Below, piece by piece: positions 7,491 to 50,142 of a DNA stretch of 64,000 nucleotides. The position numbers were made by a program, and so were the translations under genes. How positions within the stretch are numbered: position 1 is the first letter of the stretch; each line of letters begins with the position of its first letter. The notes under the pieces are model-generated. The model did not search any database. It was not told the origin of the DNA and worked only from the letters and a program-made list of their open reading frames with translations. The DNA comes from Botryllus schlosseri (lineage: Eukaryota): the NCBI GenBank assembly GCA_051294905.1, contig CM119380.1, positions 20,956,001 through 21,020,000 of the forward strand, given 5' to 3'.

Positions 7491-10400
7491 TCAGTCGTAG
7501 AACAGTTCTGCCTCCTCCAACGTTGACATGAGCGTAATTCCACGGGTTTCTGGTAGATATCTGCATATGATCGCACCCAATAGAGACAGCACTCCGCATA
7601 ACGTCTAAAAGAGGGTGTATATCATAAACCTCTGAAAGAAAAGACTATAGCTTTAACATTCCACTTACGCCAATGATCCAAGGAATAGAACTTTGGAGAT
7701 CCAAAGCGTACGGTGCCACAACAGTAGCTAGAGACCCAAACGTTGAAGCAGTGCCGACGGCTGTCCCTCTTCAAGACGAAGTATATGTAAATATAGGCGT
7801 GCAGATGACACGCACCGACAATACATCGGAACTCGAAACTTACCTTATCACAGTCGGGTAGACTTCCGCAGTGTACACATAAAGTATGTCGAAAGAAACT
7901 GATACTCCAAGCTTGCCAAGCTGTGCGAATGCGTTTTCCAGGAAACCCAGGACTGTGAAGGAATATAGCGGTGGATGGGGCGACATTATGGCGCGGCACG
8001 TCAGTAAGAAAACAATGTCTTACCTGAATTCCGACATAGCCACTTCGATAAAGATGATGCGAAAAACATCCCTCCCGCGATTGCAAGTGCAGCACTCATC
8101 AACGTACGACGCCCGAACTTTTGCAGACCGAATATCGCGATCGGCACGGATATGATCTCCAAAAGACCACCGATAGCATTGTTCAGATATATATTCCCTG
8201 TTTATACCATAGATTAATCCGACGACCAGATATTTCCAATTCGGACCGATACGATCAGTTCAGCGATTTACATCAGTGGTTCCCAAAGTGGGCGCCAGCA
8301 CCCCCTTAGGGCGTTCGAGGAACGATTAAGCAGCATAGAAGACAAATAACTGATCTAGCTTAAAAATTCGAGGTGGTCAGTAAGGAAGTACTTTTACTTT
8401 TTCGGAGTAGTCAAGTAGGTTTTGCATAATTGTACTACTCGCTAAAGTGCTTATGTTCTTAGATTACTTTATCACTACTACTTGGCAGCTTCTTAGGTAA
8501 AACTACTCCATTACTTACTTTCCGCACATTGAATTCTGTAAAGTAGAAAGTAGTTTTGGAACATGTTTGCTTCAATTTCATGAGTGAAATTGTCATGATA
8601 GCTAGGGAAGAGCTCCTGTATAACGGTTACTGTTCGAAAATTGGGCCAATTTGTTGCATCATCGGTCATTTTGCATAGTCTGTAGTCATAGTCGAAGATG
8701 TAGGCTACTCTTGAAATTAAAAAGTGGCCATCTCCGATGGTAACGAAATGCAATCACTCGACCAAATCTACTCTTAAGACTACTTGAGTACTTTTTACAT
8801 CTTCATTTTCTACTTGTACTAGTTTTCATATGTCGTTGAAGTTGCTTCTTGAATTGAATAGACATTTACGGCGTTAAGCGTATATCTACTTGGGTAGCAA
8901 CGAAAACTACTTTAGCCATCACTGATAAGTATGCAGCGGTTGGTTCGGGTACTTCAACAATAGAATGCATGCCAGCACAGGGAGGAGAAAATGTCCCAAC
9001 ATCCCTAGTTGGGTTGCTTGACAGAGCATTATTTTATATTTGATAAACAAGTCATCTCAGTGAACCCACCTATGCTACGTCATAGTTCATCTCGACTTGA
9101 CACTTGCTATAATACGTTGCATTAGTTAGGGATACGATTGCCAATAATGACCATATACCAGCCTCCGGTATAGCCAGTAATGATAGAATACGCTCGTTCC
9201 CCCCATTTTTGACATCCAAATCGTATCGATATTGCGTCACAATGACTCGGTGACGTCACGTCAATTTTGAAAATACTTTTTGTACTCAAATTTCCATCAC
9301 GGTAAGTGGTAACGTCTATATCACTGCTGGTTTCTTACCTGAAAATCTCCCCGCGTTCAGCGTAACCGCATAAAATGCCATCTTGCTTATGAACCAGAGC
9401 ACGAGAATTTTGAAGCTAAGGACACGCATTTTTGGCTGTCTGAACAACACTGTTGGTGGATGGTAAGTTCTTGCATGTTCATTTCTCTAAAAAGATTGAA
9501 GTTACTATTCAGATGGATAGGGTTTCTCAGCCGAGATAGCTGTATCCACAGAAATGGGCGAATAACTGCGTAAGTCGTACTTTGCGTCACCGCTAAAAGA
9601 TTATTCATGACGTCATGATAAATTTGGCGAATCCATGAAAATAACAATTACTATTATTGAACTAGGGCAGTGCTTTTCAACCTGTGGAACGCAGGTTCGC
9701 ACTTGTGCGAATGAAAAAAATTGCAGTGCGAACGACGGAGGTGGTGCGAATGGTGCGAATGAAAAATCCGGATGAGAGCGAATGAAAATCGTGAATAATT
9801 GTTAATTTTCTGACGTGGAATAATTCAAATAAACGTAATAGGAAATTCAAGGGCAGTGTGACTGTTGTAGTTGAGACGCAATTGTAAAAATACTTACGAC
9901 GCACCGCACTATAATCGTAGCTCTCGCACAGGACTATTGAATTAATATTCTCGCACTATAATCATTACGTAACCATGCAGAAGCCTGGTTTGGAAGCTGG
10001 TGTAGTGGCAGACATACAGTATATCAGCCCGTCTGAGCCTGCATCAGGCTGGAAAAATGACGTCAAATTGAGTTTCTGCTTTTTTTTCGCTAAACAATCA
10101 TCACATTTTCGTAATAACTGTTCGATTAGCGCGAGGCACGAGAATAGTTGTATATACCATCATTACAGACTCACATCTGCAAGTTTCTGTAACGTAAATT
10201 TTTACCCATTCACGGTTTATAAAAGTATGGACCGCAAAGGGTATAATTTTGGGTCGACACGGTGCCAGAATTTTACATATCCAAGGTCACTTGTGTTGGG
10301 TACTGTAGCCAATAAGCGAGACACGAAGAAAATATGGCTTTATCATGAGAATCAATGATACTATTTGTCCAACTGGTTTTTCTAGAAAACATGTTCGAAG

Positions 10401-12502
10401 ACCGTTGGGATAACCTAGTGTAGAAGTGAGGAACGACGAGCGAGTTTAGGCCTATGAGACTCATCCATGTCGAGGCCAACCACTTCTGCGTCGGGGCTCA
10501 TGAAGACGTTAAGTTTTGGCCAACAAACCGCTGATAAAATGCGGTCCCAAAACATAAGCGGTGACAAAACCCTGGCCCAAAATGACCGATGCTGGATGAC
10601 CAAACCTTTCGATGTGGATAGATGCTCCGTTGTCTGCACGGAATAGTCTCGTTCTTGCAATCTTAGTAGACAGCATAGTTACAGTGGAAGGCCTACAAAC
10701 TGGTTGAAATTGAAACGAGCGAAAAAGTTGCCTTTTTAATGAGACACTTGATAGCTTAAAATTAAGCTACATAGTAGCCAATTTGTTGTTCATCTGAACA
10801 AAAAGTTGTTAAGTATCTTCATCTATGACAATTTTCGGTTGGTTTGTGCGAATGAAATTGATTTTACAAAAAAGTGCGAATGGAGCTCAAAAAGGTTGAA
10901 AAGCACTGAACTAGGGGATGCCTCCCTTCACCCAGGTACCGCGATTCTCCATTGTCGCAGTCAAATCAGGTGAACATAGTGCTACTTTCAAGCGAAAGCA
11001 TTCAGCAAAATAGGCAAGTATACAATAGCTGCGAGATAGCAAAATTTTGGTATCACGTGCTAGAGCGGGTTTATCTATTCCATAAATACCTCAGATCTGG
11101 CCTTGTCCCATATCTCCACATTTAAATGAATGTTGTTTTTCTTTGCTATCTTCGTGGCGGCTGCTGTCCCTTGTATGATTTTTCCCTTCGTGAACAGCCA
11201 GCTGAGAACGAAAGAAAGTTTTCAGAAAACTGTGTCGATAACTTATAAATGCGAGCAGTTGAGTTTGCAATAACTATACCTTGGGGACTCCGGCATTAAA
11301 GCACAGAAGGCTAACGCTGGGACGGACAATAATCCAAGGGTCACGAGGAGATGACGCCAATTCTGTAGCATATAAGCTATGAATGACAGTAGAATGCAGC
11401 CAAACGCAAACGCTCCGTGGATTCCAATACCAAATATAGTTCTCCACTTCGCGCCAGTTATTTCCACGACTATGAAAAGAGAATGTCGATTGTTGGATTC
11501 ATCGTGCATGTACCCTTTTTAACTAACGCAAACCGTATATAAATGAGGCCGCGAATCCAGCTACGATTAGCAAACCGGCCATGAATCTAGTCGCACCAAA
11601 CAAGTATACATTCTGAGCAGAAGACGACCCCAGGCATGCAGCTATGACTCCGACTTGGGTCACGGCTACAGCGTTTCTTCTACCTATCCTAAAACATTTC
11701 GAGGATTTTCATTTGCGTACGAGGACAGTCTACCAACTCCTTTTCTAAATCAATACTCACAAATCAGAGAGGTTACCGATCGCTAAAATACCAATCACGG
11801 TCCCCAAGAAATACACTGCTGACAACGTAGCACGCAGAGACTCGCGTTCGCAAACAAGATCGAACTTGCAATCATGCCGAAGCAAGTTAACCACGTTTCA
11901 GCAAAGCGATAGAAAGGAACAGTAAACGATTACAAGAACGATGTGGGCTTTGCAATGAGCATAGTCTTACCTCCATTGTGGCAGTAGTGAACTGATCAGG
12001 TACATTGAATACATGCGAGACACAGTACTCAACGTTTTTCAAATGTGCATTAGTCTGATTAAAGTGACACATTCCGTCGCAAAATACACACGAATAGTTG
12101 CGATTAGTATAGCGTTGGCACCCGTTGAATCCCTGTCAGAATATTCACCGGTTAAAATCCAATATGTATTTGTTGGTGAATATCTGATCTATTACACACA
12201 TGTTTGGTTTTAGGCGCACTTTCTTGCAGGACTCTCTCAAACGAAACGTTGCTGCAAGGTAGGTTATCGTCCACTTCGTCAACCCAGCACCTGTATTCCG
12301 GCACTTCGAAGAGAAAAACTGACAAAAACTGATGCAATCCATTCAGCATGGGAACGTAGCACGCCATCGCCACTAATATGCCCAAGTACCAGGTCATGTG
12401 ACCGATATGGTCTTGAATAATTTCGTAATTGACGGACATGTTATTGTTTTCGTCCGCCTTCTTTTTCGCCAGCAATGGGTCCGTTTCGGCAGTGATGGCC
12501 AT
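7491..12502 (-). CDS. SLC22-family organic cation/anion MFS transporter, 11 exons, 556 aa
   Basis: Exons 12502-12200, 12132-11971, 11864-11761, 11688-11534, 11469-11280, 11201-11090, 9486-9339, 8197-8024, 7952-7844, 7768-7669, 7604-7491. All GT-AG and phase-consistent, 1671 nt. Motifs EFDLVC, LSDLIGRR, PESP, GNIYLN, FGRR, YTAEVYPTVIRG, LPETRG. Confidence 0.92.
8369..8924. mobile_element. hAT-like MITE family (termini CAGAGGTGGTCA / CAGTGATGGCTA, rich in AGTAG/CTACT motifs)
   Basis: Left end (C)GAGGTGGTCAGTA at 8369, right end TAGCCATCACTG at 8924. Related ends or fragments at ~190-397, 21912-22100, 32220-32480, 35285-35793, 39345-39500, 41175-41326, 56050-56173, 56820-56935. No clean TSD. 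Confidence 0.7.
9668..10908. mobile_element. Non-autonomous hAT element in SLC22 intron 6
   Basis: TIR CAGTGCTTTTCAACCT. Perfect 8-bp TSD AACTAGGG (9660-9667, 10909-10916). GTGCGAA subterminal repeats. Confidence 0.92.
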
Positions 12503-12899
12503 GTCATACGGGAATGCAGTTCGGCCGCAAATACCGTAGGCCGAAATCAAAACTTATATAAACAAAAATGTATAACTGAAATAGATGCTGACTTATTAGT
12601 GGACAACTCAATAGCTGAAAAGCACGCGCCAAGGCAGCAGCGCAGGCGCAAGATCACGGCAATCATAAGGTCGGATTCGTACCACCAAACTGATCACAAA
12701 CGATTGTGTGATTGCCTGCATCCGTGACTGGTGATGCATTTACCGCTGCTGACATATGGGCTTTGCTCCACTGATTCCAATCAGGATTATTATTATAGTT
12801 ATAGGGCCAACCACTCACTGAGATCACTGTGATTGTCGCTATCACGGTAATTCGAGCACTGGAATAGGCATACACAACTATACATATGATATGTAGTAT

Positions 12900-13106
12900 T
12901 AGGGTTGCCATATTTACCACTTTTTCAAAATTTTAAAACTTGCAAAACCGGAAGGAATCCTGATCAAATGGAAAATTTTTCCCACTTCCTGGTCGGTTGA
13001 CCAAAAAAATGTCAACATTCCGGCCAGTCGAATTTGGCCGTATATTTGACCAAAATTATCAGAAAAGAGCACAAAATCTCAAAAAAGAGGACGTACGGTA
13101 ACCCTA
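12900..13106. mobile_element. hAT MITE (TAGGGTTRCC family) between the divergent SLC22 and RPL26 starts
   Basis: TIR TAGGGTTGCCATA / TACGGTAACCCTA. TSD TGTAGTAT/TGTAATAT (7/8). Confidence 0.8.
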
Positions 13107-13916
13107 TGTAATATATGAGTGAATTTAATATTTTGAAATTCAAATATTATTGTTAAGATTCATATTTAAGAACAAATCTAAATCCAGAATTAATTTCGTA
13201 AGCTGTCAAAAGTAGGGTACATATCCAGCGAGGAAGATTGTACAGTAGAAACTCCAAGTCCAAAAAGTCAGAATTCAAACACTGCTTCGGAAAAATCGGT
13301 TATATCCGATTCCGATTATAATCCTGTCGAAATCTTCAGATACGTTATTTTCAACCTAGTCCAAACTCATCTATTCATCTCTGATCATCTCTGATCGCCG
13401 ATGTTTACCCCTGGGCAACATACAAACTGAAAGCCAAACCATAATTATACGAAATCCTCGATTGAACGAGAATTTAAAAGAATTTTTCAAGTAGGCCTAC
13501 ATGACAAAATATACTTCTTAAAAGTATTGATTGCCCGTTACCACACTTTCATAAGATATCAAGTGTAAGGTTTGACTTATATTTGGGTAAAAGCTAATTG
13601 CAGGAACCCTTTGCAAGCTTTTATAATATCTTCTGTAACTGATCATTCAATGTACGTACATGTTGCTTATTTAGGGGCTCCTTTATTGATATCTGTCTTT
13701 TCGAGTAAATTTGCATTCTTTAATTTTATCGCAATCGTGTGTAGTTTTGAAATGACGAAATTTTTTATAGACTCAACTGAATCAAAGTTATTCGCAATAG
13801 CCGACAGTTTATGGTCATCTATGGTTCATGTTGTGATGTGTTCAGTTGTTCACGTTAAGCGCATTGGCGCCACATGTGGTTGGACTCACCGAAGCGTCAA
13901 GTTGAATAGATTGTGG

Positions 13917-13942
13917 CTTCCTTTTTGACAGGGCTTCGCAAG
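13917..13942 (+). promoter_or_regulatory. Probable 5'TOP non-coding first exon of RPL26
   Basis: CTTCCTTTTT pyrimidine start, donor AG|GTTGGT at 13943, and acceptor TGTAG directly before the ATG at 14098. This is the standard ribosomal-protein gene layout. Confidence 0.6.
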
Positions 13943-14097
13943 GTTGGTCTCCAAACTTTTAAATCTTCGTTAATCCTCACTGTCTTGCTTGTTTCGAGGG
14001 ATATTGTAATTTGGTTCGCCAATAAATTGTGTTTACAAAACCTGATTTCTAACCGTCACGTTTCCTCAGTATCTCATCAGAATCTTCTCTGTTGTAG

Positions 14098-16643
14098 ATG
14101 AAGTTCAATACCTTGAAGACCTCTTCCCGCAGGAAGAATAGGAAGGCTTACTTCACCGCACCGTCGCACGTGCGCAGGAAGTTTATGAGCTCACCCCTGT
14201 CCAAGGAACTGCGAGCCAAGTACAATGTTCGAAGCATGCCCATTCGTAAAGACGATGAAGTCCAGGTGAAAATTGAATTAACTGATCTCGATAACATCAC
14301 TGAAAATTGATTCGCTCAACGTATTTATTTTGTTTGTTCTTGTTTATGGCATTTGGTATTTGATGTCCTTCAGTTGAAAATTGATGTTTGTATATGCTTT
14401 TCTGTTGATATCATATGAACACTCGGCTTGATTTCGGTAGGGACCAAAATGGATGGTATCAGAGCCCAATGTGGAATCGGTGTCTCGTGCACACCAAAGA
14501 TTCTTCTGACTACACACAGGTGTGACGCTGAGAACCGTCTTGGCACACCAAATATATTACGCTAAACGTATCGGGATTCCAACCCGGATCAGAGCTATAT
14601 ACAAATTTCGATGCTTTGTGGGTCAAAAACAACCGCTATTTTCAATCTGGTCTGGGTATTTCACGTATTTAGGATATCAAAGTTAAATATGCAGATGGCC
14701 GTATTGATTAAAGGTAGGAGTTACGTAATTTTGCAAGCCTTTGAGCCAGACTGGAATTAGTGGTTGTTTTCTGCCATAAGTTGCGTGTGACAGAAAGGTT
14801 TCTTTCATAGAATAATTAGGGAATTGAATGGAAAGTTGCGCGTGACGTTTACCACCAATTCCACTCTGGCCTTCGAGTAGCCACTCAATACTATACTTGA
14901 CGGTAATCTTGAAGCTGATGACCAGAGCGCAAAATTTGATTAAACCGGTCTCAATTCAAAACTATCTTGCACTGATTCCGAAAATATGTATATTAAAATC
15001 TGATCCGTGCACTGAAACCCAAAAAAACTGTTTGGGAAGCCCGTAATCGGCATTGTTTCCAACAATGGTAGCGCCGGTAGACAATGACCTAACAATGTCT
15101 GATACTGTTTGTGATGCCATTGGGCGTCTCAGCGAAGTCCAGCCTTGATTCTCAGAGTATATCGTGTCATATCAATTACCGTAATGCGAATAAGTCGTAA
15201 TGCGAGTAGTTGACGTATTTTGCGTCCTCACACGTTTACAAATTTGAATGAATGCAGATTATGGCACAGAAGCCTACGGATATCATCATAGAATTTACTA
15301 TCAACGCTTGTATTTTTGCACGCAACAGGCCAATGTACGAAACCGTTTGTTCCATTCGGCTCTTAGCGGTTCATGAATTTCATTGTAATATATTTTCGCA
15401 CGAGTCATAAAATTGTAGAAACTGACGAAGCGTACAATTAATTTGAATTGTGCCAGCTGGTTTTTTACCTGAGTGTGAGCATAGCGACCGACCGAGTTGA
15501 ATTCAACGAACAGGTGTCACTTGGAAACGATGTGACACTAATTCTAGTGATGCGAATGTTATTCCTGATAGGACGCTGAACGTCAATATTTCTGCTGGAG
15601 TGCAACTACCGGCATTGTGTCAATTAACAATGACTCTACCTACACGAGTTGACCGGCTTGAAATTTCCGTTTTTGATAGCAGGCTATACGATTGATTTTT
15701 ACTGGTGTCCAATATTCGTGCCTGAATCCATTACAGATCGTCCGAGGTCATTTCAAAGGCCAACAAGTAGGCAAGATCATCCAAGTCTACAGGAAGAAGT
15801 ATGTTGTACACATCGAGAGGATTCAACGCGAAAAAGCTAACGGTGCAACTGTCCACGTCGGCATCCATCCCAGCAAGGTAATAATATTTAAAAACTTGTT
15901 CCATTTGCATTGTTATTGACAGGCCATAACGGCCGCATTAAAACCGGACTTGTACAAGCTGCTGGATTTTCATATGTGCAAATAGAACTACTCTTGAAAA
16001 CTTGACACTAGAACTAACTACATTTCGTTTTATCAGAATGGGAGGAGTTTCGATCCTCCAACCCCCCTAGAATGACGCTTTCTTATGACAAAGATTGCGT
16101 AGCATGAAATATGTGATAACATCTGTCATCCAGAAGCACCTTAAGCTCCAACCAAACATATACAAGCAGTAGAAATTGTTGATTGCTGCTCTTTCTGGGG
16201 ATTTGCGTTAACGGTTATGGCACATTACTAAATCATTGTGCTAAGGTAGTGTGTGATCGAGAGCATTATGGTGACAAGGATGATAAAGTTTTGACGTAAT
16301 TTTTTGAATGATGACGTGCCGTCGTGAATATTCGTAGTGGCATAGTAAAATGGAGTAGTGTCATAGTGCCAATGTTGAAACTCGTGATTGACATTCTGTA
16401 TGGGTATAAGCGGATTTTTGACGGCTGGTTGATTTTGATTATGGACTCCCTAGTAGGCCTATTTCAAAATCTGTTGTGGGGAGAATTCTCATGTTACTGC
16501 GCTTGTTTTCACAGGTTGTTATCATGAAGTTGAAACTCGATAAAGACCGTAAGCGTATTTTGGAAAGGAAAGCCAGTTCGCGGTTGGCCGGTACCGACAA
16601 GGGCAAGCACACAGAAGAGTCCATTCAGGATATGGAAACCTGA
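14098..16643 (+). CDS. RPL26: 60S ribosomal protein L26 (uL24), 3 coding exons, 145 aa
   Basis: Exons 14098-14265, 15737-15877, 16515-16643. MKFN...[31 protein letters not shown]...[28 protein letters not shown]. Confidence 0.98.
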
Positions 16644-35136: not shown

Positions 35137-38100
35137 TTAGTATTCGAAGTTAGTCGGCACGTTGGCGACATTGCGTAAATGCTTCGGTTGCAGCATGGCT
35201 CCGTTGTTGGCGATGTGGTGGTCTTGCTGTTCGCGCTTCAGGAATCTTGCCGCGATTCTAAATTTCGAAAGCATGATTTTTTTATGAAGCTACTCGAGTA
35301 GAAGTAATGCCGTAAATTTCGACTCAATTATAAGTAGAAGTAGCAATTTTGGACACTTGTCAAAATACGTCAAGTGGAAGTAGAAATGAAAGGTTCGAAT
35401 CCGTAAAGTACAAAAGGACTACAAATAGTAGATTAGATCCAGCGGTTTAGCAGAATTGCTAGATGTATCTTCGCGACTGATGGAAAAGGACTGACATTGC
35501 AGGTGGATTTTTCAAAAATAGAGTCCGTCGCCGTGGTACATGGGCAATTACTCCTTTACACGCGACTCTTATGACAAGCTCACTCATATAAGAGCTTTGC
35601 AAACTTATCCCAAAACGACTGACTACTTTTTAAAATCTAAATTGTAAAAATTAAGGTATTTTGCCTAACCCGAAATAGGCCTACTATTCAAGTGGAAATG
35701 GAATAAGCTTGGAAATAACCACTTCAGTAAATAGCTCAAGGTAGCAAAACATACTTGACCACATAAAAAGTACTTCGTTACTGACCACCTCTGGCCGTAA
35801 CGTAGTACGACATTGGCGAGATAGCGTAGTGGTATAATCGACAGCTACAACACCAATGGGTTTTGGGTTCGACTCCAGAATTCCTACCCAAGTGTTGGAG
35901 GTTTATCTAGGCTCCTTCTCGCCATCTTATCCGCGTAAGTGGTGTCTTAGAAAAGGCCTAGAAGTGGTCCGTGCTACAAGTCGGCAGTTACGGAATCCAA
36001 AAATAAGGAATATCGACATGGTGTAAATGACCATTGTAGTCGAAAAACACCGTGAATACCATAAACAACAGCAACAGCACGACATTAATATTCCGCCGTT
36101 TACGTTATGTTAATCGCCGAAGACGCTCATTGTTCATTCGCTCAGTGTGACGTCCAAGTCGCGGTAAGATATTGTCACTTATTGTTGCGATCACCTACAT
36201 TCCATATCATAGATTCGGTACAACCATTACATAATCGTGACGTTGACGTGACCAAATTTGCGGGTGACACATTAATCTCTGGTAATTAACGCGTACGGTA
36301 TTGCTCACCGTTCATTTAATGAATAGACGACGTAGCCTTGCCCCGAAAAGACGCAAAATACTTGAATGTAGGCGAGACATCGTGACGATGGGCAAGATAT
36401 TACCATTACAAACGGATATTAGTTCGATCACTCGTTATATGTTACGATTCGTTGCATGCTATAGATAGCAGAGCGACCGTCACGTATAAGCAAGACACGG
36501 ATTCTCACTCGCCTCAGAATAAGGCGGAGCATGGACTGCAGCCGGATTGGATATCCGGCCGTACTTTTTCATTTTTGACCGAAGCCGGAACAGTAATTTT
36601 ACCGATACGGCCGAAGCCGGACCAGAGAAATGAAAAACAGGATCGAAGTCGTACCAGAGAATGTGTCGATCCGCTCTGCACTACTAGGAAGTGCAGTTTT
36701 TCTCTATTGCACTTATGCGCTGTGGTCGAAATCGGCGAAACACGCAATTTGTGTTTACAGTTTACATTGTACAATAAATACTGTACAAGTGTATAATGTA
36801 CAATTGTACATACTGCTGAACGAGCCTGCCGCCTTCTTCCTGTTCCTTCAATCTGTAAAGTTCTTGCTGTCTCGGATCCACGTATTCCATCAGATCCAGG
36901 GCCTCTTTTACGCGTCGCAAAATTTCGAAATTCTCTCGTCCGCGTATCTAAAAACGAAGTCGCCTCGATAACGCATGGAAATCCGAGAATATACATTTAA
37001 ACAGCTCGCAAGATGAAATGTTAGCAGTTCGGTTCTAAGTTATTAAAATTCGGGCCGCGACCCTTCGAACGTGAATGTGACAGGGTTGCCAGATTAACCC
37101 TTTTGTGGCCACATCCCAAAATTTGGCTCTTTTTAGAGGCAGTTGGCCCCCAAAATTAATTTGGCCCCTTGACCCTTTATTTTCAATATTTGGCTCTTAT
37201 TCGAGGCAATTGAGACATACCATCGAACTGGCTATTCGAATAAATGTATCTCGCAAATTGAGCCGACAATGTTTATGCCAATGTCAAAGATTCGAGTGGA
37301 AACACTGTAGCAGATGAAGATTTGGAATTGTTTTAGTAGAATGTAGAGGTAGAATATGTTTGAATGGTAAATACAGATTTGTGAACAGTTGAACGAAAAA
37401 GCATCGAACATGGCTGGAAGCTAAGTAGCAGAAAAGGTCTGAAGAAGACTACCCTTATAGTACTTATTGATTGATTGAAATTTCAAAGAAAAAAACTTCA
37501 ACATAACCGGATAGTTTTTTGATGAAAAACCTAAAAATTAAGTATATATGTTGGATAAGTTTCAAATGTAAAGAATCTATTCTCTCAATTTTTATTTAAA
37601 ATTCATAAAATTTAATCACTTTCATATAATAACACTAAAAGTTATACATTTTACGATTTTATATTCTAGTGGAAAAGGCTTGAAACAATACGGTAGCATT
37701 TATTGTAGTTGGATCCAGTGTAGTTGTAGGTAGTGAATTTGGTGTCCTACAAATAGTATCAACAATATAAAACTGGAATTCCAGGTGATTGACAAAGGTA
37801 TATGGGTAATTTTGCAACGTTATTGAGCAATTCGGCCTTTTTTGGCCCCTTTTTTCGGCGCAGTTTGGCCCATTTTTCTCAAAAGATGTCTGGCAACCCT
37901 GGAATGTGAGATTTTGCTATTTAGACCTAACAAGCAATAACCGGCGGGGATAATACACAGGACCAAAGCTGCAGCATCAATGGGTTGCTGGTTCAAGTCC
38001 AACCGAGGTCAAGTCCCGAATTCCTACCTAAGTGTTGGAGGTTTATCTCGGCTCCTCGCCATCACATCCGTGTAAGCGGTGTCGTACAAAAGCCTATATG

Positions 38101-41100
38101 TGGGTGCATGTTTTCAAATTATTGTCAGTAATTTGAATTGAAAACACCCCAATTTTGTATGCCACTATTTCGACATTGCCTGCTGCTTCGTGGAATTCGT
38201 GTGTCAGCTGTCAAGGGTTGAGCGCAATGTTGATCACTGATGGCACAGCGTCTAGCGCCTCGCTATGCTCTTGTGAATGCGCTCTAAATCCCCACGAAGG
38301 GGCGAGTCTAAAAGGTTACCTCCACCCCGTAAAACACTACATACCTTTAAAATGTACTCGTCATCATCTCGATCCAACGCGACGCGCTTTCTTTTGCCAA
38401 GAAGGGTGTGTGCTTCGCCTGTAACGCGAGATGCGGATGAAAGCGATGATGGCAACCTATATACCATATGCGGGTGGGCAGTAACGAAGTACTTTTACAT
38501 ATTCGTAGTACTGAAGTACATTTCGTCTTGGTTATGTTTTTGTGACCACTTACATTTCTTACCTTATACTTTTTAGATAGAAATAATTAGTTTTTAGATT
38601 TGGGATTTTGTCGAAGTAGAATGTCGTTTTGGGATATGTTTCCATCACCTTAACTGTGAAATTATTATAACGACCGGACGAAATGGCCCCTGTGTCACGG
38701 TAACTGATATTTCCGAAAATTACACCAATTCGTATTGCGATTAGTCATTTTGCGGTAGCCTCGAATAGGCATCTTGGAATTTTGATAATAGCCACATTCT
38801 ACTTGTAATCGAGCATAATTTTACTGCTGCTTGAGTGGCAATGACTACTTTGACCACCTCATCATCACCACTCAATACCGACGCGGAACAGTAATTCAGC
38901 ATTTTAAAGCAATGTTGTTAAACATTTGAGAGATCAAGCTACTGAGAAAATGGATTGGATCAACCATACCGGTTTCAACTGAGGGTGGCTAGTTAGCTTA
39001 CTAGACTTATCTACACGATTGCACGCGACTACTTACTGACATCCAATCATAGTCTTATTTTTGCTTACCATCGTGCACATCGGCGATTTCCAAGATACCT
39101 TCTTCTCTAAAGTGATTCGGATTGTCTCTCCTCATCGTTCTCTTTTCCTCTTGTGCCCTGTCCCGACCGGGGCAGGAACATATTCTAATCTCCACCGCTC
39201 GCCGACCAAGTACTTGGCCGCTGAAATTGGTACGGTAAGCATTTAGCGGCCTTTCTACTGATAATTTATACCAATTCGAAGAAAATCGTAAGGCTATGTT
39301 AATTGATGCGTGCTGGTTAAAGTAGCCCACGCTGGTACCGAAAGCGTATATAACTAGAAGTAACGTCGTAAATTCATACTAGGTATTAACTAGTAAAAGT
39401 TACGATATCCAAGACACTTCGAAACTACTTCCAGTTGAAGTAGAAAATACAGATATGGAAAGTGCACAAGTAAGTAGTTTCAAAGAGTAGCTTGGGTGAA
39501 AATGTCTCATATTTTAGCAGTTAATTGGAGGTGAGTGCTTTTGACATTACATGGACACGAACAACGTCTTGGTAACTAACTATATGACGTTATCGTTGCA
39601 TGGCTTTGTCAGAACAAAAGCCTTCCCAGTCATTATTATTATTTGCATCGTGGCGCTTATGACCGATTAGGTCTTTTACACCACGTATACGTGATGATTA
39701 GAATACGCAGGATTTCACAGGTACGTATTACACGTTAAAACAAATTCCACAACCGGGGTTACCAATGGGGGAAATGTGAGAAAATTTTCAAGTAAAAATA
39801 CGATACTATAATATTTGCACGATTCCACTATAGAAATCGGCGGTGAAAATCAAATAGAGAACAATACACTATAAAATGCGATGCTGTTTCTGGGGTGCCG
39901 CATGATCCCGATCGGGGTCTCCGAGCATTTGATACGGCATAAATGTGAGTTCAGGAGACAATGACCCGTCATCTGACGGAATAATATACGGTCGTATACC
40001 CGTAGTCATGTGTTTATCGTGATGTCAATCGAATCACGCCAGGGGTTTCGAAGGAGCCTCATTATTGTACCAAACCAAACACCGCAGATATCAAATCCAA
40101 GTTGCTGTATATGCAATACCTATAGATTTAAACTCACTCGACGTTTTCGAAAGTAAACACCAGCATGAGTGGCCGCCTGTTAATCCCGCCAACGCAACTG
40201 GACAAACACATGAATTTGAATAACACCGTCGAGTAGTCTGTACCGACCTGCATCGACAATTTCCAGACTTATGAATCAGAGCGATTAGTCTCAAACCCGG
40301 TCCATACGCTTTACCTGGGGGTCTTCATACAGTATTGATACACTCTCGCGTCCGTCCGCTCCGAAGTTGTACTGCACAGTGTGTCGGTTGCTAGGCATCT
40401 CAACGCGAACCAAATGGTTCACCGGGATGTGGGACGGAGTCGCTAAAGATGAAGGGGAAACTTACGGAGGTAGAAACTACGCTGAAAATTTGAGCTCAAT
40501 TACAAGCGGAATTAGCAATTTCCAAGACATATCAAACTATAGGGTTACCATACGTCCTGTCTTAAGAGGATTTGTCCTCTTTTTTTCACATTTTTGAAAG
40601 TGTCCTCGGAGGACGCCCGAATGTCCTCATTTTGCGAATTTGTCCTCTTTTTTGAAAATTTTGGTTAAACGTATGTTAAAATTCAACTGAGATATAGGAA
40701 ATCAGTACTCAAATAACCGTTCGGCGGTCTTTCGGGAATTGAGTCGAAAAGTTGACCCTTTGTTTAGTCAACCAACTACATACTCGCAATAAATTTACCA
40801 ATGTTTCCGAATTTTACTCCGGTATTGTAAGTCTGGTAATTTTTAAAAAGTGTCCCTTTTCAGATTCCTAAAATATGGAAACCCTATCAAACTATTTCTA
40901 GTAGATATAGAAAATCAAAGGCATGCAAAGCACTAACGTAAGTAGTTTCAAGAACTAGATTTGGTCGCGGGGTCGCAAGATGTATCTTCGCCAGCTATAC
41001 AACGCGAAATGACCATAACAACGCTACACGGTTCCACACACGTAGAATATCTAGAAAATATATTCATATTCAGTTTCGTCATACAGCGGCTATTTAACCC

Positions 41101-44100
41101 GGGTCCTACGACTTTCTACTGAAAAGAGTGCTGCAAACTCATCCTACAACGACTTTATACTTTTTAAATTCTAAATTATGAAAAGTTAGTAGTTTTACCT
41201 AAAATCTGTTCAAGTAGAAATGGAAGTATTCTACAAACATAACCACTTGAGTAAGTATGGTGCAAGTACGCAAACATTACCTGAGTACTCCGCGTATGTA
41301 GAACTACTTCGCTACTGACCACCTCTTGAAACTGAAAACGTTTGTCTCTATTGAATAACCACGATGATGGACTTGAATTCAAATATGTTAAATGGATTTC
41401 GATGTAGGCCTACAAAGTTTGCCAAACTTTATTTGGACGCAGACATGTATTGTCAATTCGGCTAGAATTTTCATGCGGCTCTAAAGAAGATATGGTTTAG
41501 CAACGGCGCTATGTCTGTGCAACGTAGCTAAACAGATGAAGTCGCAATGTCCGAGTCGAAAATTAAGGGGTTAAAGGCTCTTTTCGTCTCACCCAGGCTG
41601 TACCCTTGTATATATGAACACCGAACAGTGAGCAGTCGGCATGACGATGCAAAATATATTTGGTATTTGGATTGGAACGTAGAAAAGCTCGAACAGGAAA
41701 CAATATTTGGATTTAAAATATTTAATCCGCTCATCTCCGCTGCATACCAAGATTTAAATCCCGGCATTCGACAAAAGAAGACGGATCTCAAGATATTTGA
41801 AGAGAAGAATCAACAAATGGAGAGCACGGCGCGTTGTTATATTTGTACAGCTCGTATTTTATAATGAAATCCTTTCCAGTCGTTGTTGGTCTCGTTAATT
41901 CTTTTGACAAAGTACCTTTCAACGGTTTTGGCCTCGTTCGTTAAAATGCTGTATATCTTAAAGACTATTTAAGTTTCTTGGTGAATTGTTATTGAATAGT
42001 TATTTTATATATCTGAAAATGATTTGAGCGTGCTGCTCACAACCTGGCTCATATCTAATGATATTTTATGACGCGTGCCAACAAAAGAGAAAAGTTTATT
42101 GCAGTTGGAAAATCAATAACAGAAGTCGTATGCGTTATGAAGAATTCATTAATGATTTGTTGGTTCGACTAGTACGGAGTACAGACTTGATGTATGAATG
42201 AAACAGTCGGTAACGAGGATTAATGCTATCCTATAGAAGGCATTAATTTTTTCACAGACGACTACGAACATACATATGGTTACTACGAAGACTGAAGCGT
42301 TCCACCTGTGCCTCTCACACTTCCAGAAATATCAACATTACCGGGAAATTGTGATCGTAATTCGTGAGCCTCACGACGCAATCATTAAATCCGCCCTACA
42401 ACGCGGTTATATATCACTTTGGTTCAGGGATGATTTTAGAATCTAAAATCTAACCTAACAATAGCCGTGAGAAACAAAACAAAAAAGGTCCCAAATTGTA
42501 GCAGAATTATCGATTGCACTCCGCATCGAATATATGAGTATTGACAAATTCATCACCGGCTGAGGTACTGGTTGATGTCATCATCAGTGTACTAACGGCG
42601 TCGCCAGGATGCGCACGGCCCCCACAGAATTTTCGACCTGGGCATCATAAGCTTTACTAATCATCGCAGCGGATCCGTGACATCACGTCAGAGTCAGGAT
42701 TTCACCTACGCCAAATTTTGGACTCTGCTGGTGCATACTGCATAGTTACTTCGGCCCGGTTACACGTGAATTGTCATTACAATGCTTTCCCATTTCGTAA
42801 TAAAATCCCAGGCTCTATACCACTCTCTGTGACAGTCTCGGCATCAAACCCTTTACTTACAGTTGTCTGTTATTTTGTGATTCGGGCATCTCGTTACGAT
42901 ATCCTTCATATGCTGCGGCCTTTTAAATACTGGCGTCGCCTTGATAATGCACCCTTGCGGAGGAGGTAGATTGCACTTGAATTGTATCGGACAAGTAACA
43001 TTCATTTTCACGAAAAGCTTGTTCAGCATTGACGAAAACTGAAAGAGCAAGGCACAGTTGTCGCGTTTGCGCCAGTTAAAATCACATCAGCAGTTAACTG
43101 CAATACCGTATATTGCGCATTTTTCGGAGCTGACATTGTCTTTTCTCCAAAGTATATTTCGAATCCGCATTCTCCAGGATAATCGCTGCAATGATGCGTA
43201 AACAGTAAATAACAATGTTGCAGGAGCGTCGCAAAATAACCAAGAGTCAACAGTACAGAGTAATATAGATTGGTGATATCATATAAGCTTGTGACAGACT
43301 TAAAGTTTGGCTTACTTGAGTGGAATAAGGAACTTTTCTGTGGGAACATGGTACTCGAAGGACGGTCCTGGTGCGTACGGACTGTGCGTTGTAACGGCTG
43401 GATCTCCGGTATTCGGACTACTTGTGTGAACGTAAACATTTTGAGTTGAATGGCCGTTTCTGTCCTGCGCGTCAACACCAGATGACTGTGTCGCGTACGC
43501 GGGTATGGTGACCAAACTTCCACCATCGCTTGAGAATACGTTCTAAAAAGGGTTGGATTACGAATTCAATAAATAGAATTAAAATAGCTCCTCCNNNNNN
43601 NNNNNNNNNNNNNNNNNNNNNNNNNNNNNNNNNNNNNNNNNNNNNNNNNNNNNNNNNNNNNNNNNNNNNNNNNNNNNNNNNNNNNNNNNNNNNNNNNNNN
43701 NNNNNNNNNNNNNNNNNNNNNNNNNNNNNNNNNNNNNNNNNNNNNNNNNNNNNNNNNNNNNNNNNNNNNNNNNNNNNNNNNNNNNNNNNNNNNNNNNNNN
43801 NNNNNNNNNNNNNNNNNNNNNNNNNNNNNNNNNNNNNNNNNNNNNNNNNNNNNNNNNNNNNNNNNNNNNNNNNNNNNNNNNNNNNNNNNNNNNNNNNNNN
43901 NNNNNNNNNNNNNNNNNNNNNNNNNNNNNNNNNNNNNNNNNNNNNNNNNNNNNNNNNNNNNNNNNNNNNNNNNNNNNNNNNNNNNNNNNNNNNNNNNNNN
44001 NNNNNNNNNNNNNNNNNNNNNNNNNNNNNNNNNNNNNNNNNNNNNNNNNNNNNNNNNNNNNNNNNNNNNNNNNNNNNNNNNNNNNNNNNNNNNNNNNNNN

Positions 44101-44717
44101 NNNNNNNNNNNNNNNNNNNNNNNNNNNNNNNNNNNNNNNNNNNNNNNNNNNNNNNNNNNNNNNNNNNNNNNNNNNNNNNNNNNNNNNNNNNNNNNNNNNN
44201 NNNNNNNNNNNNNNNNNNNNNNNNNNNNNNNNNNNNNNNNNNNNCAAACAGGAAAACTTTTTCATGTGCAATTAGATAGATTACAAATTTGAAATTGGGA
44301 AACGACTGTAACATCAATGTGACGACAGTAACATCAATGTGACGTCACTGATCGATCGTGACGTATTGAAAAATCGAAAATTTAGGCAGGTCAAAGATGC
44401 CTTTCGCCCTACTCGGCTACGCACCTAATTGTATAGGAATACGAAGTTCAGAAAAGACTCACAAATACACCGTTGTAGCTCAATTTAACTAGACTGTATC
44501 CTAACCATACCATGGTGGTAGGTTACGTACGTCCTATATCCGCATTCCATTTCTCTAACCACGTCTAGGTTTTGGAAGAGCCTACGGTAAGAATTCAATT
44601 CTGGCTAAACCATCCCTTCAAACTCTGACAAAAACTACGCAATACAAATTTAGGCTGGCATCCCAAAGAATATATCTTTCTTACCGTCATGTCGGGGCGA
44701 ATTACCAGTTCAGACAT
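35137..44717 (-). CDS. p53/p63/p73-family transcription factor (DNA-binding and tetramerization domains, no SAM domain found), ~411 aa as modelled
   Basis: Exons 43542-43316, 43185-43107, 43038-42861, 40442-40315, 40247-40138, 39220-39069, 38418-38345 and 36947-36814; the boundaries of the first of these and the 39069 donor are best guesses. Probable terminal exon 35257-35137; tentative first exon 44717-44685. Motifs [60 protein letters not shown] 650-N gap lies in the first modelled intron. Confidence 0.93.
35815..35990 (+). mobile_element. tRNA-derived SINE, family 2
   Basis: A box TAGCGTAGTGG (35823-35833), B box GGTTCGACTCC (35866-35876). The body (GTGTTGGAGGTTTATCT, GCGGTGTCGTAC-AAAAGCC) recurs at ~37960-38100 (+) and partly at ~52512-52635 (-). 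Confidence 0.72.
37081..37901. mobile_element. Non-autonomous hAT element in a p53-family intron
   Basis: TIR CAGGGTTGCCAGA. Perfect TSD GAATGTGA (37073-37080, 37902-37909). Confidence 0.92.
40540..40886. mobile_element. hAT MITE (TAGGGTTACC family) in a p53-family intron
   Basis: TIR TAGGGTTACCATA / TATGGAAACCCTA. Perfect TSD TCAAACTA (40532-40539, 40887-40894). Confidence 0.9.
43595..44244. other. Assembly gap (650 N)
   Basis: Run of N; it may hide p53-family exons. Confidence 1.
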
Positions 44718-44754
44718 GCTCGCCAACTTAAAGGGACTAACGTTAGACTTGCCC
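44712..44754. promoter_or_regulatory. Pair of perfect p53-family half-sites
   Basis: AGACATGCTC (44712-44721) and AGACTTGCCC (44745-44754) both match RRRCWWGYYY, with a 23-bp spacer. They sit at the tentative first exon of the p53-family gene. Confidence 0.5.
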
Positions 44755-46423
44755 CTAGTCAAAACTTCTCCGACCGTACGCCTTCTTCAATTCGTTACTG
44801 AACAAACACCACGATCCATAAAAAGTTGGCAGAACGTTAAATAGATGTGACCGTTGGCTAAGCCAACAATTAGGGCAAAATCTAACAAATATTAAACGGT
44901 ATGGTCAATACACAGTTGAATCCTCGACAACGCTGTCATAACACAGTGCCTCGACCTATGAAAAGGCCCGTTTGTTAGGAGAGAAAAAACCGTTTCTTGA
45001 GATCGCAATAAAAGAGACGTCAATGAATGTTTCAACGGCAGTACTCTCGGCACACAATGGAGTTATTGACTCTCCGATTCGAAGTTTCGCCGGAGAGAGT
45101 ATACACCAGGATTTACGACTAATCCAAATTACACATTTTATCGAGGCAAGCACGGGTTCTTCATCGTAAAGCCTATTTTTATAGTACGAAAAATAGCCCA
45201 AATTACCAATCATTCTCATCCGACCCTATACATGCGATATTTGTATGCTATTGTAATGTATGTGTGATGAAGCAATGAAACCTCGCTATAACCGCAACAT
45301 CGATGACCCACTGTCCGCAATATTTAATAAGCACGTTTCAACAGCATTGTCGTGGTGTATTAGAATATTCCGTAGATGAGACTCAATTACGTATACTCAT
45401 ACTGTCCATCCCTTGAAATGTTGTTACTATTCAAAAACTAGTTGTTTGTATGTTTCGTTGCGACCCACTAGAGCTGGAATTCTCTCGCCTGTTGTCTCAA
45501 ATCAATTGCCGTTTGTTATTCTTGGTCTACCATCGCGAACAGCCGGTCCGTAGGGATGCTACGCAGGAACGTATTTATTCATTTTAAAACTCACTTCGAC
45601 GCCCCACATTTTACGTGAATACATTGAGATAAGATCTGCTCATTTTGGACTGCAACGAACTCTGGCGCAAATGAGTTCACCGTATGGCTTGACTCCAGTC
45701 CATACTGATGGGCATGGCGGCCGACTGTGCCTCGGTTCGGTTCGTTTTATTAGCAATTTTTATCAGTTCAATACACCACAAAATTGCGATGCCAGGGTCC
45801 GGAATGAAAATATAACGGGTCGTCAAGAAGTTGATCAAATAAAAGAAGTTGCAGATACATTTTGTGACGCATAACGAATCAAAAGAATGTTATGATGTTT
45901 GGGTAACGCAATCTGAGGTGGTGCGTTCATACTGTATCAACAATATGGATCACGATTACTTCGGAAACGCGCGATATTACAGAAAAATCTAGAAGTAGGC
46001 GATAGCGGTTACGAATATATTGACAAAGTAATCACGGTCGTTGATGTTTAGATTTATTTCATTTCCTTGAAATTGAGCATAACGCATATTTGAAGGCAAT
46101 ATATTGTTCCACTTTGCGCAATCGCCGTTGGTGAGGCTGCATCACAAGACTAAAGATTTTGAAAATTGTGATGTTATGTAATTGCGTGCTACAACAAAAG
46201 ATATCCAATGCGCAACTTTATCGTTGATGATTTGTTTCCCCAACTAATACCGATTTCGTTCTTGCTAAGTATGCCAACGTGATACATAAGCGAGGGACTG
46301 CAGTAGATTCAAATGTTTAGTAAATAATGATGAAATACCAATTGATTCCTTCAAATAGGACCATCAAAGAATACGTTAAATGAACACGAAATTCTTCTAT
46401 AACGTATCATGCTTCTCGTAAGG

Positions 46424-47296
46424 CAGTGGTTCTCAACCCTTTTGTCTTCGCGGACCCCTTTTGAACCGTTACGGACCACCGCGGACCCCCAAAGTTTTAG
46501 TTCAAATTTAGCTCAATTATCGTGAAACCCTCATCTGTCTTGTGCAAATATTAACTGTAGGCTACGGATTACCAGCAACAAATTGCATTTTCCTTAAGAT
46601 AACACCATACTATGTATAATGTATATAGAATTTGAGTGGACTTTTGTTATTTCAAAGCGAATTCTGTAGATGCATTTCTTGAAATATAGGTGATCGTGCC
46701 TTGAAAATCTGCTCCTTCGAGTTGATCTGAACTAGTGTCGAAACTCCATTCTCACAAAGATAGATGGTGGGGAATGTAATAATAACGCGAAATGCTTCCG
46801 ATCACACCTTTGGGTATGATCACAACATATATGTCACCAAAATTGAGAAATAGATTTCAATTAACTTATTATACGTCCCTCGTCCAGTCTAGTCATTTCT
46901 ATCTGGCAGCCCATCTTGAAGTTATTATGGAATAATGGTTATGTATAATGTACATATATTACAGGAGAAAATGGAATTTTGCAAACATATCGAAGTCACC
47001 GCGATTGTCTGATTGATCCTACATTCCAATTTTTTTCCACAAACCTTAACAACACACCTCTCAACAGTAGCATGTAGGTATCTGTAGGCTATTGGCAATT
47101 TGGTAATTTAAATGAGTTTGCACAGTAGGATGCTTCATCTCAGAAGGCCATTCTGTTGATGTGACTCCTGGAGATTTAGCACTTACGAAGCGAAACTGCC
47201 TCGTGATCTCCGTAATTTCAAGAAATACAAATTCAACCATTTTGCAAATTTAGATGTTTCGCGGACCCCCCGCGGACACCCGGTTGAGAACCACTG
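46424..47296. mobile_element. Non-autonomous hAT element
   Basis: TIR CAGTGGTTCTCAACC. Perfect TSD TCGTAAGG (46416-46423, 47297-47304). GCGGACCCC subterminal repeats. Confidence 0.93.
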
Positions 47297-47577
47297 TCGT
47301 AAGGCAACACACGTTTCGTATACCCGAAATCTACACGATACAGATATTGCGAGCAGCGGTTACGAATAACCATACAGAGCAGCTGTGTAGTTTACATATA
47401 CGACTAATACTAGCGACCGTTGAGTTGTAATGATTTGATATTTTATTTGGAAAGTAAATGGTGTGAACCTCCGAAAGGTTCAGGTTCGTGTGAACGCGAA
47501 CCTTTTTGAAAGGTTCTGTGTGAACGCGAATACGTGAACCTATGACGTCACGTGACGTCATATTGCATAGTTACGAC

Positions 47578-48780
47578 TAGGGTTGGATTATCCGGATAAC
47601 GGTTAACCGGTTAACCAGTTAACCACAGGTGTTTTTAGTATCCGATATCCGGATATAAATCTGCCGGTTAACCGGATAAAATAGTATCGTTAATAATGTG
47701 TTTTAAACTTTTAGGAAGCTTCAATAAGTCGTATTATCAGTGTTTCGCGCGGCCAATTAGCGAGAAGCGTGTCGACAATTAGCGGGGTACGTCAATGCAC
47801 TGTGTAACGCGACGCAATCTCCCGCTGAGAAGATCGCCAAATTAGGTCATTGATTGCCGCGAACTCGGCTATCGTTGTTGGCCTGGTTTTTCGAGTCTTC
47901 AACAAGCCTATAGTTCCGCTGGCAGAATCACATCTGCAATATGGTCTGTGGACATTACACCATCACTGGCCTACATAATCGCATCTGCATTGGCTTGGTG
48001 CTCACGATATTTCGCTGGCCTGCGTAATCGCATCTGCAATAGGCATGGTGCGAACGATATAATCGCTGGCGTAACCATAGTCTCGGGGCTGGCATGCGTT
48101 GGCTCCTATCTCTTGGTGGCTTGGAGACAATATGCCGCTGAGAATATTATGATCAGCGATTGTGATTAATGAGTTACATTGCGAAACTGAATGACATCGA
48201 ATGTTCGCATTCCGGAAACATGTTCGTGCGTGCAAGCGTAATTGATTTCCGCTGATACTAAATTCGAAAAAAAATCGAAACCACCTCCTTTTATTTAAAA
48301 CACCCCTCTTATTTTTCGGCTGGCTACGGGCCTGATCATGTGAATTTCTCATGGAGGAATTAGAGCGAGCTATCATGTCGGCCTCAATTCCGGTATCAGC
48401 TACTCGTCCTTGCAGTACTGGACACCTAAACAGAAGAATGGGCAAAAAGGAAGCGCTGCCTACTATATTCAGCCTTGCTTAGCCTACTATAATTCAGCCC
48501 ATTTTGTGGAAGCAGAAAGAGCATTTAATACGTGTGGACTCTTTGTTACAAAACTCCGGTCCCGGCTGCAGGATGCCACTATTGATGCGGTGTGCTTTAT
48601 AAGGAGGGAGCTGCAATTACACTGTGTAATGATTTTGCGATCCACTTTTCATGCAGACCTCGTGACATCGATTATCTCACTTAGGATTCACTATCCGGTT
48701 AACCGGTTAGCTAAATTCCAAATATACGGATATATCCGTTATCCGGATAGTGAAAATTATTGATATCCGAACTAACCCTA
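47578..48780 (+). mobile_element. hAT element (TAGGGTT TIR, ATCCGG/TTAACCGG repeats) with a transposase dimerization-domain remnant
   Basis: Perfect TSD GTTACGAC (47570-47577, 48781-48788). ~48505-48610 encodes VEAERAFNTCGLFVTKLRSRLQDATIDAVCFIR, a typical hAT C-terminal motif. Confidence 0.92.
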
Positions 48781-48853
48781 GTTACGACCCTAGATTTAAG
48801 TGAAGTGATATAGTAATGTACTGTCCACGATACCTAGCGACGATACAGGCCAC

Positions 48854-50142
48854 TAGGGATGGCGTGAACCTCTGAAAGGTTCAGGTTCGTGTGAACTCGA
48901 ACCTTTTTGAAAGGGTCTGTGTGAACGCGAACGTGAACCTCATGACGTCACGTGACGTCACATTGCCAATTCCAATCCTATCTTTCAATGAAGTGATAGC
49001 CTAATTAGCCTGTATCAATGTGACACAGTGTGTACCCTGTACGGTGTACAGGGTAAGGGTACACCGTACACGATAACTAGCGACGACTCGGCCACATAAT
49101 AGCACCATAGTGTCCTATATGGTGTCGACACAGCCAAATCTCACGCCTCAGTGAAATTGTATCACGTCACAATTTCCATTTGGCTACAGGCAATTTGACG
49201 GTCATTTTTGACCGGCTTGACGAGCATTAAATTTGGTAAAACGGGTATCAATCGAAAGCTGACTCTGCACTGATTACGAAAATATAAATTTTATTCCGCT
49301 CGTGTCCCTGGAACTCCCACAATCAGCCTCGAATTTTTCATTGTTATGGAGATTGACATTGTGACGCAACAATGGTTTCTGGCTCTTTTTCTCTTGAGCT
49401 ACTCTCTCGATTCGCCAGACAGCATTGTTACGTCCTCAGCTACTCTCTCGTTTAGCCAGACAGCATTGAGGACTTACCAGGTAATACAAGCTTACGCCTT
49501 TACGGTCTAGGTCAGACCAGACATTGTATTCAGCATCTGAATATTACTACATTGATATTGAGCAGAGTGTAAAACGGGTTTTTATACTTGTTGCCGATAT
49601 AACCCCATTAACAAGTTATACAGTAGTAGCCAACACCTCTATCGCATGGATTTGGTTTTAATGATACAGTAAAAATATGAAGTAAAGATTGACCCCGTAC
49701 GCGTGCTAGATTTTTTGCATCATAAAACGATACCAATCTCATCGATGGGTTGAATAAGTATCATTCGCTGACTACGCATTTCACTCGTGATGTTGTGTGA
49801 TTGCAGGTCAAGCTCACAGCAGACAGTCACTAAATATTCACAAACGGTAAGCTGGATATTTCGAGCAAACTTTTGTAACAAAGCAAGAAAAACTTTTGAG
49901 ATTGTCAAGGTAATTGCTCGTTTAGTGTTGATTTTTTATGCTGCAAGTGCCATGCATAGAGTGGCCCGCAGTTTAAATGCAATAAATTTGAACAAAAGAT
50001 GTTATAATGAAGTAAAAATTGTAATATATGAAAAGGTTCACAGTACAGAACCTACCAAGGTTCTGTTGTGAACGCGAACCTCTAAATTTCCGAGGTTCAC
50101 ACACAGAACGCGAACGTGAACCTCACGCTCACACCATCCCTA
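48854..50142. mobile_element. TAGGGATGG-family hAT copy inserted into its own family; chimeric interior
   Basis: Both TIRs intact. TSD CAGGCCAC/CAGGCCGC (7/8). Confidence 0.9.

Follow-up and report, generated by a model that had tools for sequence, protein, structure and literature searches.

Gene organization and predicted product

The window, meaning the whole stretch of 64,000 nucleotides of Botryllus schlosseri DNA that was analysed, carries a p53-family gene on its minus strand. The gene model was guided by P0001, a 419-aa protein whose transcript contig (L001, 1413 nt) comes from another species, and comprises ten exons, spanning 44883 to 35137, with introns that are all of the GT..AG type. 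The predicted whole protein is 411 aa. The features of the gene are given below; the upstream ORF, the start codon and the coding stretch within exon 1 had their limits read from the sequence.

44685-44883, minus strand: exon 1, with transcript contigs colinear with the genome
44883-44718, minus strand: 5'UTR of exon 1, about 166 nt
44787-44819, minus strand: upstream ORF in the 5'UTR, in frame, 10 codons plus TGA
44745-44754, minus strand: half-site 1, GGGCAAGTCT, CAAG core, in the 5'UTR, perfect RRRCWWGYYY
44712-44721, minus strand: half-site 2, GAGCATGTCT, CATG core, containing the start codon, perfect RRRCWWGYYY
44717-44715, minus strand: start codon ATG, inside half-site 2
44717-44685, minus strand: coding part of exon 1, 11 codons, followed by the donor ACG/GTAAGA
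43543-44684, minus strand: intron 1, 1142 nt, GT..AG, from the sequence and the transcript joint, containing the N gap
43595-44244: N gap within intron 1, the sole run of N in the window
43316-43542, minus strand: exon 2, linker before the DNA-binding domain (NVFSS...IPLN), from contig pieces of three runs
43185-43107, minus strand: exon 3, protein-guided model
43038-42861, minus strand: exon 4, protein-guided model, Pfam P53 DNA-binding domain
40442-40315, minus strand: exon 5, protein-guided model
40247-40138, minus strand: exon 6, protein-guided model
39220-39069, minus strand: exon 7, protein-guided model
38418-38345, minus strand: exon 8, protein-guided model
36947-36814, minus strand: exon 9, protein-guided model
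35257-35137, minus strand: exon 10, protein-guided model

Exon 2 also aligns to P0001 and to P0151, a protein of Styela clava. Exons 3-10 (35137-43185, minus strand) encode the DNA-binding domain, a basic linker, the tetramerisation domain and a short tail. Exon 4 alone matches Pfam PF00870 (E = 6.8e-17), and the best PDB matches are the DNA-binding domains of p63 and p73 with E-values of about 1e-61. In the comparison of P0001 with the p63 DNA-binding domain (E = 3.7e-61), the Zn ligands line up, as do the K/S/R contact motifs, and the window protein is identical to P0001 at these Zn-ligand and DNA-contact motifs. The DNA-binding domain of the product is intact and p63/p73-like. Both PF00870 and PF07710 are found on P0001, PF07710 is also listed for P0151 among precomputed domains, and the stretch homologous to this tetramerisation domain is encoded by exons 8-9 of the window. 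With both the DNA-binding and the tetramerisation domain present, the gene product is assigned to the p53/p63/p73 family on domain content.

Exon 1 and its splice junction

Contigs from three RNA-type runs (X3, X25 and X13, belonging to three studies) were placed on positions 43250-49249. One raw-read RNA run (X23) was placed on the same region, where its depth of 1-2 reads adds nothing. The original prediction proposed that the ATG within half-site 2 opens 11 codons that end at a phase-0 donor after 44685 and continue at the exon beginning at 43542. The 11 codons and the phase of the donor are borne out by the sequence, by L001 and by the transcripts, and the 43542/44685 joint is found in contigs of all three runs. 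It skips 1142 nt bounded by CT..AC on the plus strand, which corresponds to GT..AG on the minus strand. This confirms the exon that had been proposed.

No other joint into 43542 was found in the contigs of X3, X25 and X13 over 43250-49249, so the acceptor is not fed by an upstream exon in these assemblies. Together with the direct joint, this means that the N gap, which the original prediction suspected of hiding exons, lies in intron 1 and conceals no exon of the main mRNA. Exons encoding a TA motif further upstream are likewise ruled out for the main mRNA, as there are no alternative joints and a tblastn search of the window gave no hit to TA-like coding sequence, in line with the earlier failure to find a convincing transactivation exon. 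Because contigs lose rare variants and X23 reaches only 1-2 reads, a minor TA-containing isoform or one starting further upstream may also exist.

The 5' extent of exon 1 is given by an X25 contig covering 44685-44883 and an X3 contig covering 44685-44882, while X13 reaches 44802. The contigs are colinear with the genome up to 44882/44883 and carry no non-genomic (spliced-leader) letters at these ends; transcription therefore probably starts near 44883, and trans-splicing of a spliced leader at the 5' end is unlikely. The reading frame upstream of the start codon is shut by the in-frame TGA at 44789-44787, within the colinear exon. This TGA terminates the upstream ORF, which is not conserved in the relative: L001 has just an ATG-AAC-TGA mini-ORF at its place.

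Exon 1 is single-copy in the genome, and the composite pattern of the half-site pair has one occurrence genome-wide, the same number as its reversed control. A repeat or transposon was therefore rejected as the source of either the exon or the pair.

Some low-depth unspliced contigs also fall within or near intron 1, namely one of X25 at 44355-44660 and one of X3 at 44523-44714, the latter crossing the donor. The unspliced contigs in 44355-44714 show about 2.6% differences from the reference, compared with 0.5% in exon 1, and may represent pre-mRNA, intron retention or DNA carry-over.

A separate gene without the activation motif

P0001 was found by a profile-free search with one exon of the DNA-binding domain, over which it is 92% identical to the window protein. 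The window protein shares 85% amino acid identity with P0001 and about 73% with P0151. L001 (...ATG TCT GAA...) carries the same 11 codons joined to AVFSS... at the same junction, and its 5'UTR contains an in-frame stop. P0151 is 425 aa long, bears the automatic NCBI name 'cellular tumor antigen p53-like' and starts MSQLVIQNDMT/NVFS, so the exon has already been captured by automatic annotation in a relative; 3 of its 11 N-terminal residues differ, with M1 and M10 both kept. The maximum-likelihood tree groups the window protein with P0001 and P0151 at 100% support, and Styela is the closest named relative found. The tree gives no resolved placement of this short clade among the other tunicate clades and did not settle whether it is orthologous to Ciona p53/p73-a. 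Searches for further orthologs with the N-terminal fragment gave no match, nor did a degenerate back-translated exon 1 pattern searched against metagenome contigs. The TA-less gene is conserved in at least three styelid-type species.

The genome contains four p53-family loci: the window gene on contig C10, a multi-exon gene on C12 and two copies on C6. The multi-exon gene (G000:C12:13813078-13823087; L010-L012) has an exon encoding the TA motif ...DNSQCFSDFFLSS... (...QCFSDFFLS...), belongs to the TA-bearing stolidobranch clade and is closest to stolidobranch proteins of 470-490 aa. The three short proteins begin, in the alignment, about 100 residues past the FSD(L/F/I)(F/W) motif of the TA-bearing tunicate paralogs, and the N-terminal alignment shows the short clade to be without the FSD[LFI][FW] region. 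A stretch at the start of exon 2 (VFSSDGGSL, with F...L spacing i+7) would be a speculative candidate for a remnant TA motif, but the central aromatic residue is missing and MAFFT does not place the stretch against the TA motif.

The two copies on C6 (G000:C6:18597971-18598516 and 18605700-18606251; L002 and L003) are tandem and intronless with intact ORFs, listed as 387 and 422 aa. They are very divergent (tree branch length 2.6), have an acidic N-terminus (...SDSQESI...) and look like retrogene-derived paralogs.

No first exon other than exon 1 was detected for this p53-family gene, and its protein is without the activation domain. As there is no TA match in the window and no alternative 5' exon, and the TA-bearing paralog is located on C12, this DeltaN-like family member has become fixed as a gene of its own and is not an isoform from an internal promoter. 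The classification of exon 1 as a DeltaN-type exon in the original prediction holds in its architecture, that is, a short private exon without a TA motif whose product starts about 100 residues past that motif in the alignment. It does not hold in the sense of an alternative internal promoter of a TA-containing gene, given that exon 1 is the sole 5' exon detected and the TA gene lies on C12. Exon 1 is thus very probably the single constitutive first exon of a stolidobranch (Styela-like) p53/p63/p73-family gene with a TA-less product. Judged from protein alignment, the acceptor at 43542 would be equivalent to that of vertebrate exon 4.

Comparison with known systems

In vertebrates, DeltaNp63 and DeltaNp73 are exon 3' isoforms that arise from the internal P2 promoter and carry a private exon of 13-14 aa. 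The styelid gene resembles them in having a short private coding exon, of 11 aa here, joined to a linker exon before the DNA-binding domain, and in giving a product without the FxxxW activation/MDM2 motif that keeps the DNA-binding and oligomerisation domains. Unlike in the vertebrate genes, the promoter and first exon are the only ones detected for the styelid gene, there are no TA exons in the locus, and the TA form comes from a different gene on another contig (C12). The short styelid protein also has no SAM domain, which distinguishes it from the vertebrate DeltaNp63/DeltaNp73 system compared.

Most likely, the short protein would occupy family binding sites, or mix into oligomers, without a classical activation motif, like DeltaNp63 and DeltaNp73; such a DeltaN-like function is suggested by its domain content. 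A point against this reading is that the short private N-terminus of DeltaNp63 can itself activate transcription.

The DeltaNp73 P2 promoter, the intron-4 promoter of zebrafish Delta113p53 and human Delta133p53, and MDM2 P2 have their own p53 response elements, which are canonical full sites and experimentally bound. The gene in the window is similar to these p53-inducible antagonist isoforms in that consensus decamers adjoin the start of a truncated family member, an arrangement on which the proposed negative feedback is based, but the candidate decamers here are 21-23 bp apart and lie in a transcribed exon.

Among tunicates, Ciona has the paralogs p53/p73-a and p53/p73-b with p63/p73-like DNA-binding and tetramerisation domains (PMC9091270). 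Both have an N-terminal FSD(I/F)W motif, which the short styelid paralog is without. No published description of a TA-less styelid p53-family gene was found, the literature retrieved covering the two Ciona paralogs; a Styela clava survey counts P53-domain genes only, and no paper was found on the missing TA domain of P0151.

Conservation of exon 1

The nucleotide comparison was made between the window and L001, a single species pair. Across the gene, 43 of 139 4-fold synonymous sites are identical (31%), which is essentially saturated. In the 5'UTR, the window and L001 are identical at 64 of 95 positions, where shuffled sequences give 49.5 +/- 2.7 and a maximum of 60 in 2000 trials. The longest run of identity in the 5'UTR consists of exactly the ten bases of half-site 1, which is identical in L001 (positions 61-70) and flanked on both sides by differing bases. 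The sole exon 1 polymorphism across the three runs, at 44755, lies just outside this half-site.

Conservation is highest around the start codon. Positions -1 to +33 form a perfect run of 34 nt that covers the whole coding part of exon 1 and is the longest in the mRNA; the next-longest runs are two of 20 nt in the DNA-binding domain. The block from -7 to +33 (44685-44724, minus strand) matches at 39 of 40 positions. All 4-fold sites of exon 1 (6/6) and all its other synonymous sites are unchanged, for which the chance is estimated at about 1e-4 to 1e-3. Half-site 2 sits in this conserved start-codon block and reads GAACATGTCT in L001, with one difference (G to A) that still fits the consensus. 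Both half-sites are thus retained in the one relative with nucleotide data, although the retention of half-site 2 is confounded by the start codon.

As synonymous sites are saturated elsewhere in the gene and frozen in exon 1, this exon appears to be under nucleotide-level constraint beyond its peptide, with the 5'UTR and start region conserved in this species pair well beyond neutral expectation. S. clava differs at 3 of the 11 residues, so the extreme conservation of exon 1 does not hold throughout the clade.

Position and frequency of the half-sites

The two perfect RRRCWWGYYY decamers described in the original prediction, with 0 mismatches each, are present on the minus strand at 44754-44745 and 44721-44712. 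They are separated by 23 bp in the window and by 21 bp in L001. As already noted in the prediction, this exceeds the canonical spacer of 0-13 bp, and the pair therefore fails the definition of a canonical p53 response element (el-Deiry consensus). The decamers are not upstream promoter elements, since both are transcribed: one is found in the 5'UTR, about 130 nt past the 5' end of the transcript, and the other over the start codon, about 163 nt past that end.

The window contains 15 half-sites where 13.6 +/- 3.5 are expected, so there is no enrichment, and the resulting density of one per about 4.2 kb agrees with the predicted chance frequency of about one every 4 kb. Among Markov-shuffled sequences of 63 kb, 9% contain a pair of perfect half-sites spaced by no more than 25 bp. 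The chance of two sites in one pre-chosen region of 200-1000 bp is estimated at about 0.001-0.02, which is nominally unusual, although the location was picked post hoc. With a canonical full site defined by 2 or fewer mismatches and a spacer of 13 bp or less, three are present in the window, at 14214, 48216 and 62607, and none in or near the gene. The nearest of canonical type, at 48216-48239, consists of AAACATGTTC and GTGCAAGCGT separated by 4 bp and has 2 mismatches. No comparable half-site pairs were found at the loci of the paralogs.

Possible meaning of the constraint

The analysis has two main outcomes: in styelid-type sea squirts a TA-bearing p53-family gene is accompanied by one dedicated to the TA-less form, and the first exon of the TA-less gene is synonymously frozen. 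On this basis exon 1 would act as a conserved regulatory block, for which several explanations can be considered. One tentative possibility is that the constraint is imposed at the RNA level, on translation initiation or on mRNA handling near the start codon, with the fit to the p53 consensus being incidental. Candidates are the 5'UTR, a small hairpin that may enclose the AUG, a further AUG in frame at codon 10, and the 5' splice site. The AUG stands at the centre of the conserved block from -7 to +33, which extends to the donor, far past the decamer; the 5'UTR is conserved as a whole, and S. clava has kept M1 as well as M10. In the RNAalifold consensus fold, made from two sequences, a GGCGA/UCGCC stem encloses the AUG, and the single G-to-A difference preserves a pair of this stem (G-U to A-U). 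However, single-sequence folds are no stabler than shuffles (z = -0.28, -1.84, +0.82 and 0.0), the minimum-energy structures differ between the window and the species of L001, and there is no match to an Rfam family; a stable conserved RNA structure was rejected on these three grounds. The lack of conservation of the upstream ORF also speaks against an RNA-level role.

It is also possible, if doubtful, that the half-sites have no special function, and that the pattern reflects a selected 11-residue peptide, the start context, the needs of splicing and the sampling of a single species pair, the consensus matches having arisen by chance. This would agree with half-sites at chance density and with a close pair somewhere in 9% of shuffled windows. 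A run of 10 identical positions in 95 columns at 67% identity is not rare either (estimated at about 0.4-0.5), and the original prediction looked specifically near this gene. Chance fits less well with the identity of all 4-fold and other synonymous sites in exon 1, set against 31% gene-wide, and with the exact coincidence of the UTR run with a pre-specified decamer.

The decamers may instead be candidate p53-family sites that place the short gene under the control of the TA paralog or of the short protein itself, giving a TA-to-DeltaN feedback of the DeltaNp73 type spread over two genes; this is rather unlikely. Both decamers fit the consensus perfectly and are kept in a species pair with saturated synonymous sites. 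Half-site 1 forms an exact 10-nt island whose edges are those of the decamer (estimated chance about 0.006-0.02 for a pre-specified 10-mer at 60-67% UTR identity). The centre-to-centre distances of 33 and 31 bp, about three helical turns, would place the two on the same side of the helix. The contact residues of the DNA-binding domain are conserved, a TA-bearing partner gene is present in the genome, and family proteins could possibly bind the two separated half-sites with one dimer each. Against such sites, the spacer is 23 or 21 bp where 0-13 bp is defining, and spacers of even a few base pairs reportedly lower transactivation sharply. The spacing is not exactly conserved, and the start codon and the 34-nt block fully explain the conservation of half-site 2, a half-site being only 10 nt. 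In addition, half-sites are not enriched in the window, the nearest canonical full site lies outside the gene at 48216-48239, and the loci of the paralogs are without similar pairs. The retention of both half-sites may therefore be taken as some support for the autoregulatory loop of the original prediction, but does not set the loop apart from other constraints on exon 1. A wider and quite improbable scenario is that styelids have split the TA/DeltaN antagonism onto two genes, with the decamers in the frozen exon 1 serving as docking sites for the TA paralog or the short protein, and with the feedback through widely spaced half-sites being of either independent or ancestral chordate origin.

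In vertebrates, one gene gives rise to mutually antagonistic TA and DeltaN products, and DeltaN promoters are often targets of the family. A separate, expressed and conserved TA-less gene is a simpler system, in which the TA and TA-less activities can be removed separately by knockout to study the role of a DeltaN-type protein in a chordate outside the vertebrates. The freeze of exon 1 marks a compact candidate regulatory element of about 40 nt plus the 10-nt island. If this were a family binding site, the feedback logic would extend beyond vertebrates, and there would be a natural case of a site that works with a 21-23 bp spacer; if it acted in RNA, a p53-family mRNA would be shown to carry a new element of translational control.

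Upstream region

About 3.3 kb separate the transcript start from the canonical-type site upstream at 48216-48239, and transcript contigs cover the surroundings of this site as well. Several short segments between 45746 and 49250, in the intergenic region upstream of the gene, have loose ends on both sides and a very high summed contig depth, reaching about 10,000-14,000 (45746-45790, 46250-46650, 47450-47650 and 48850-49250). These high-depth segments are shared with abundant transcripts or repeats elsewhere.
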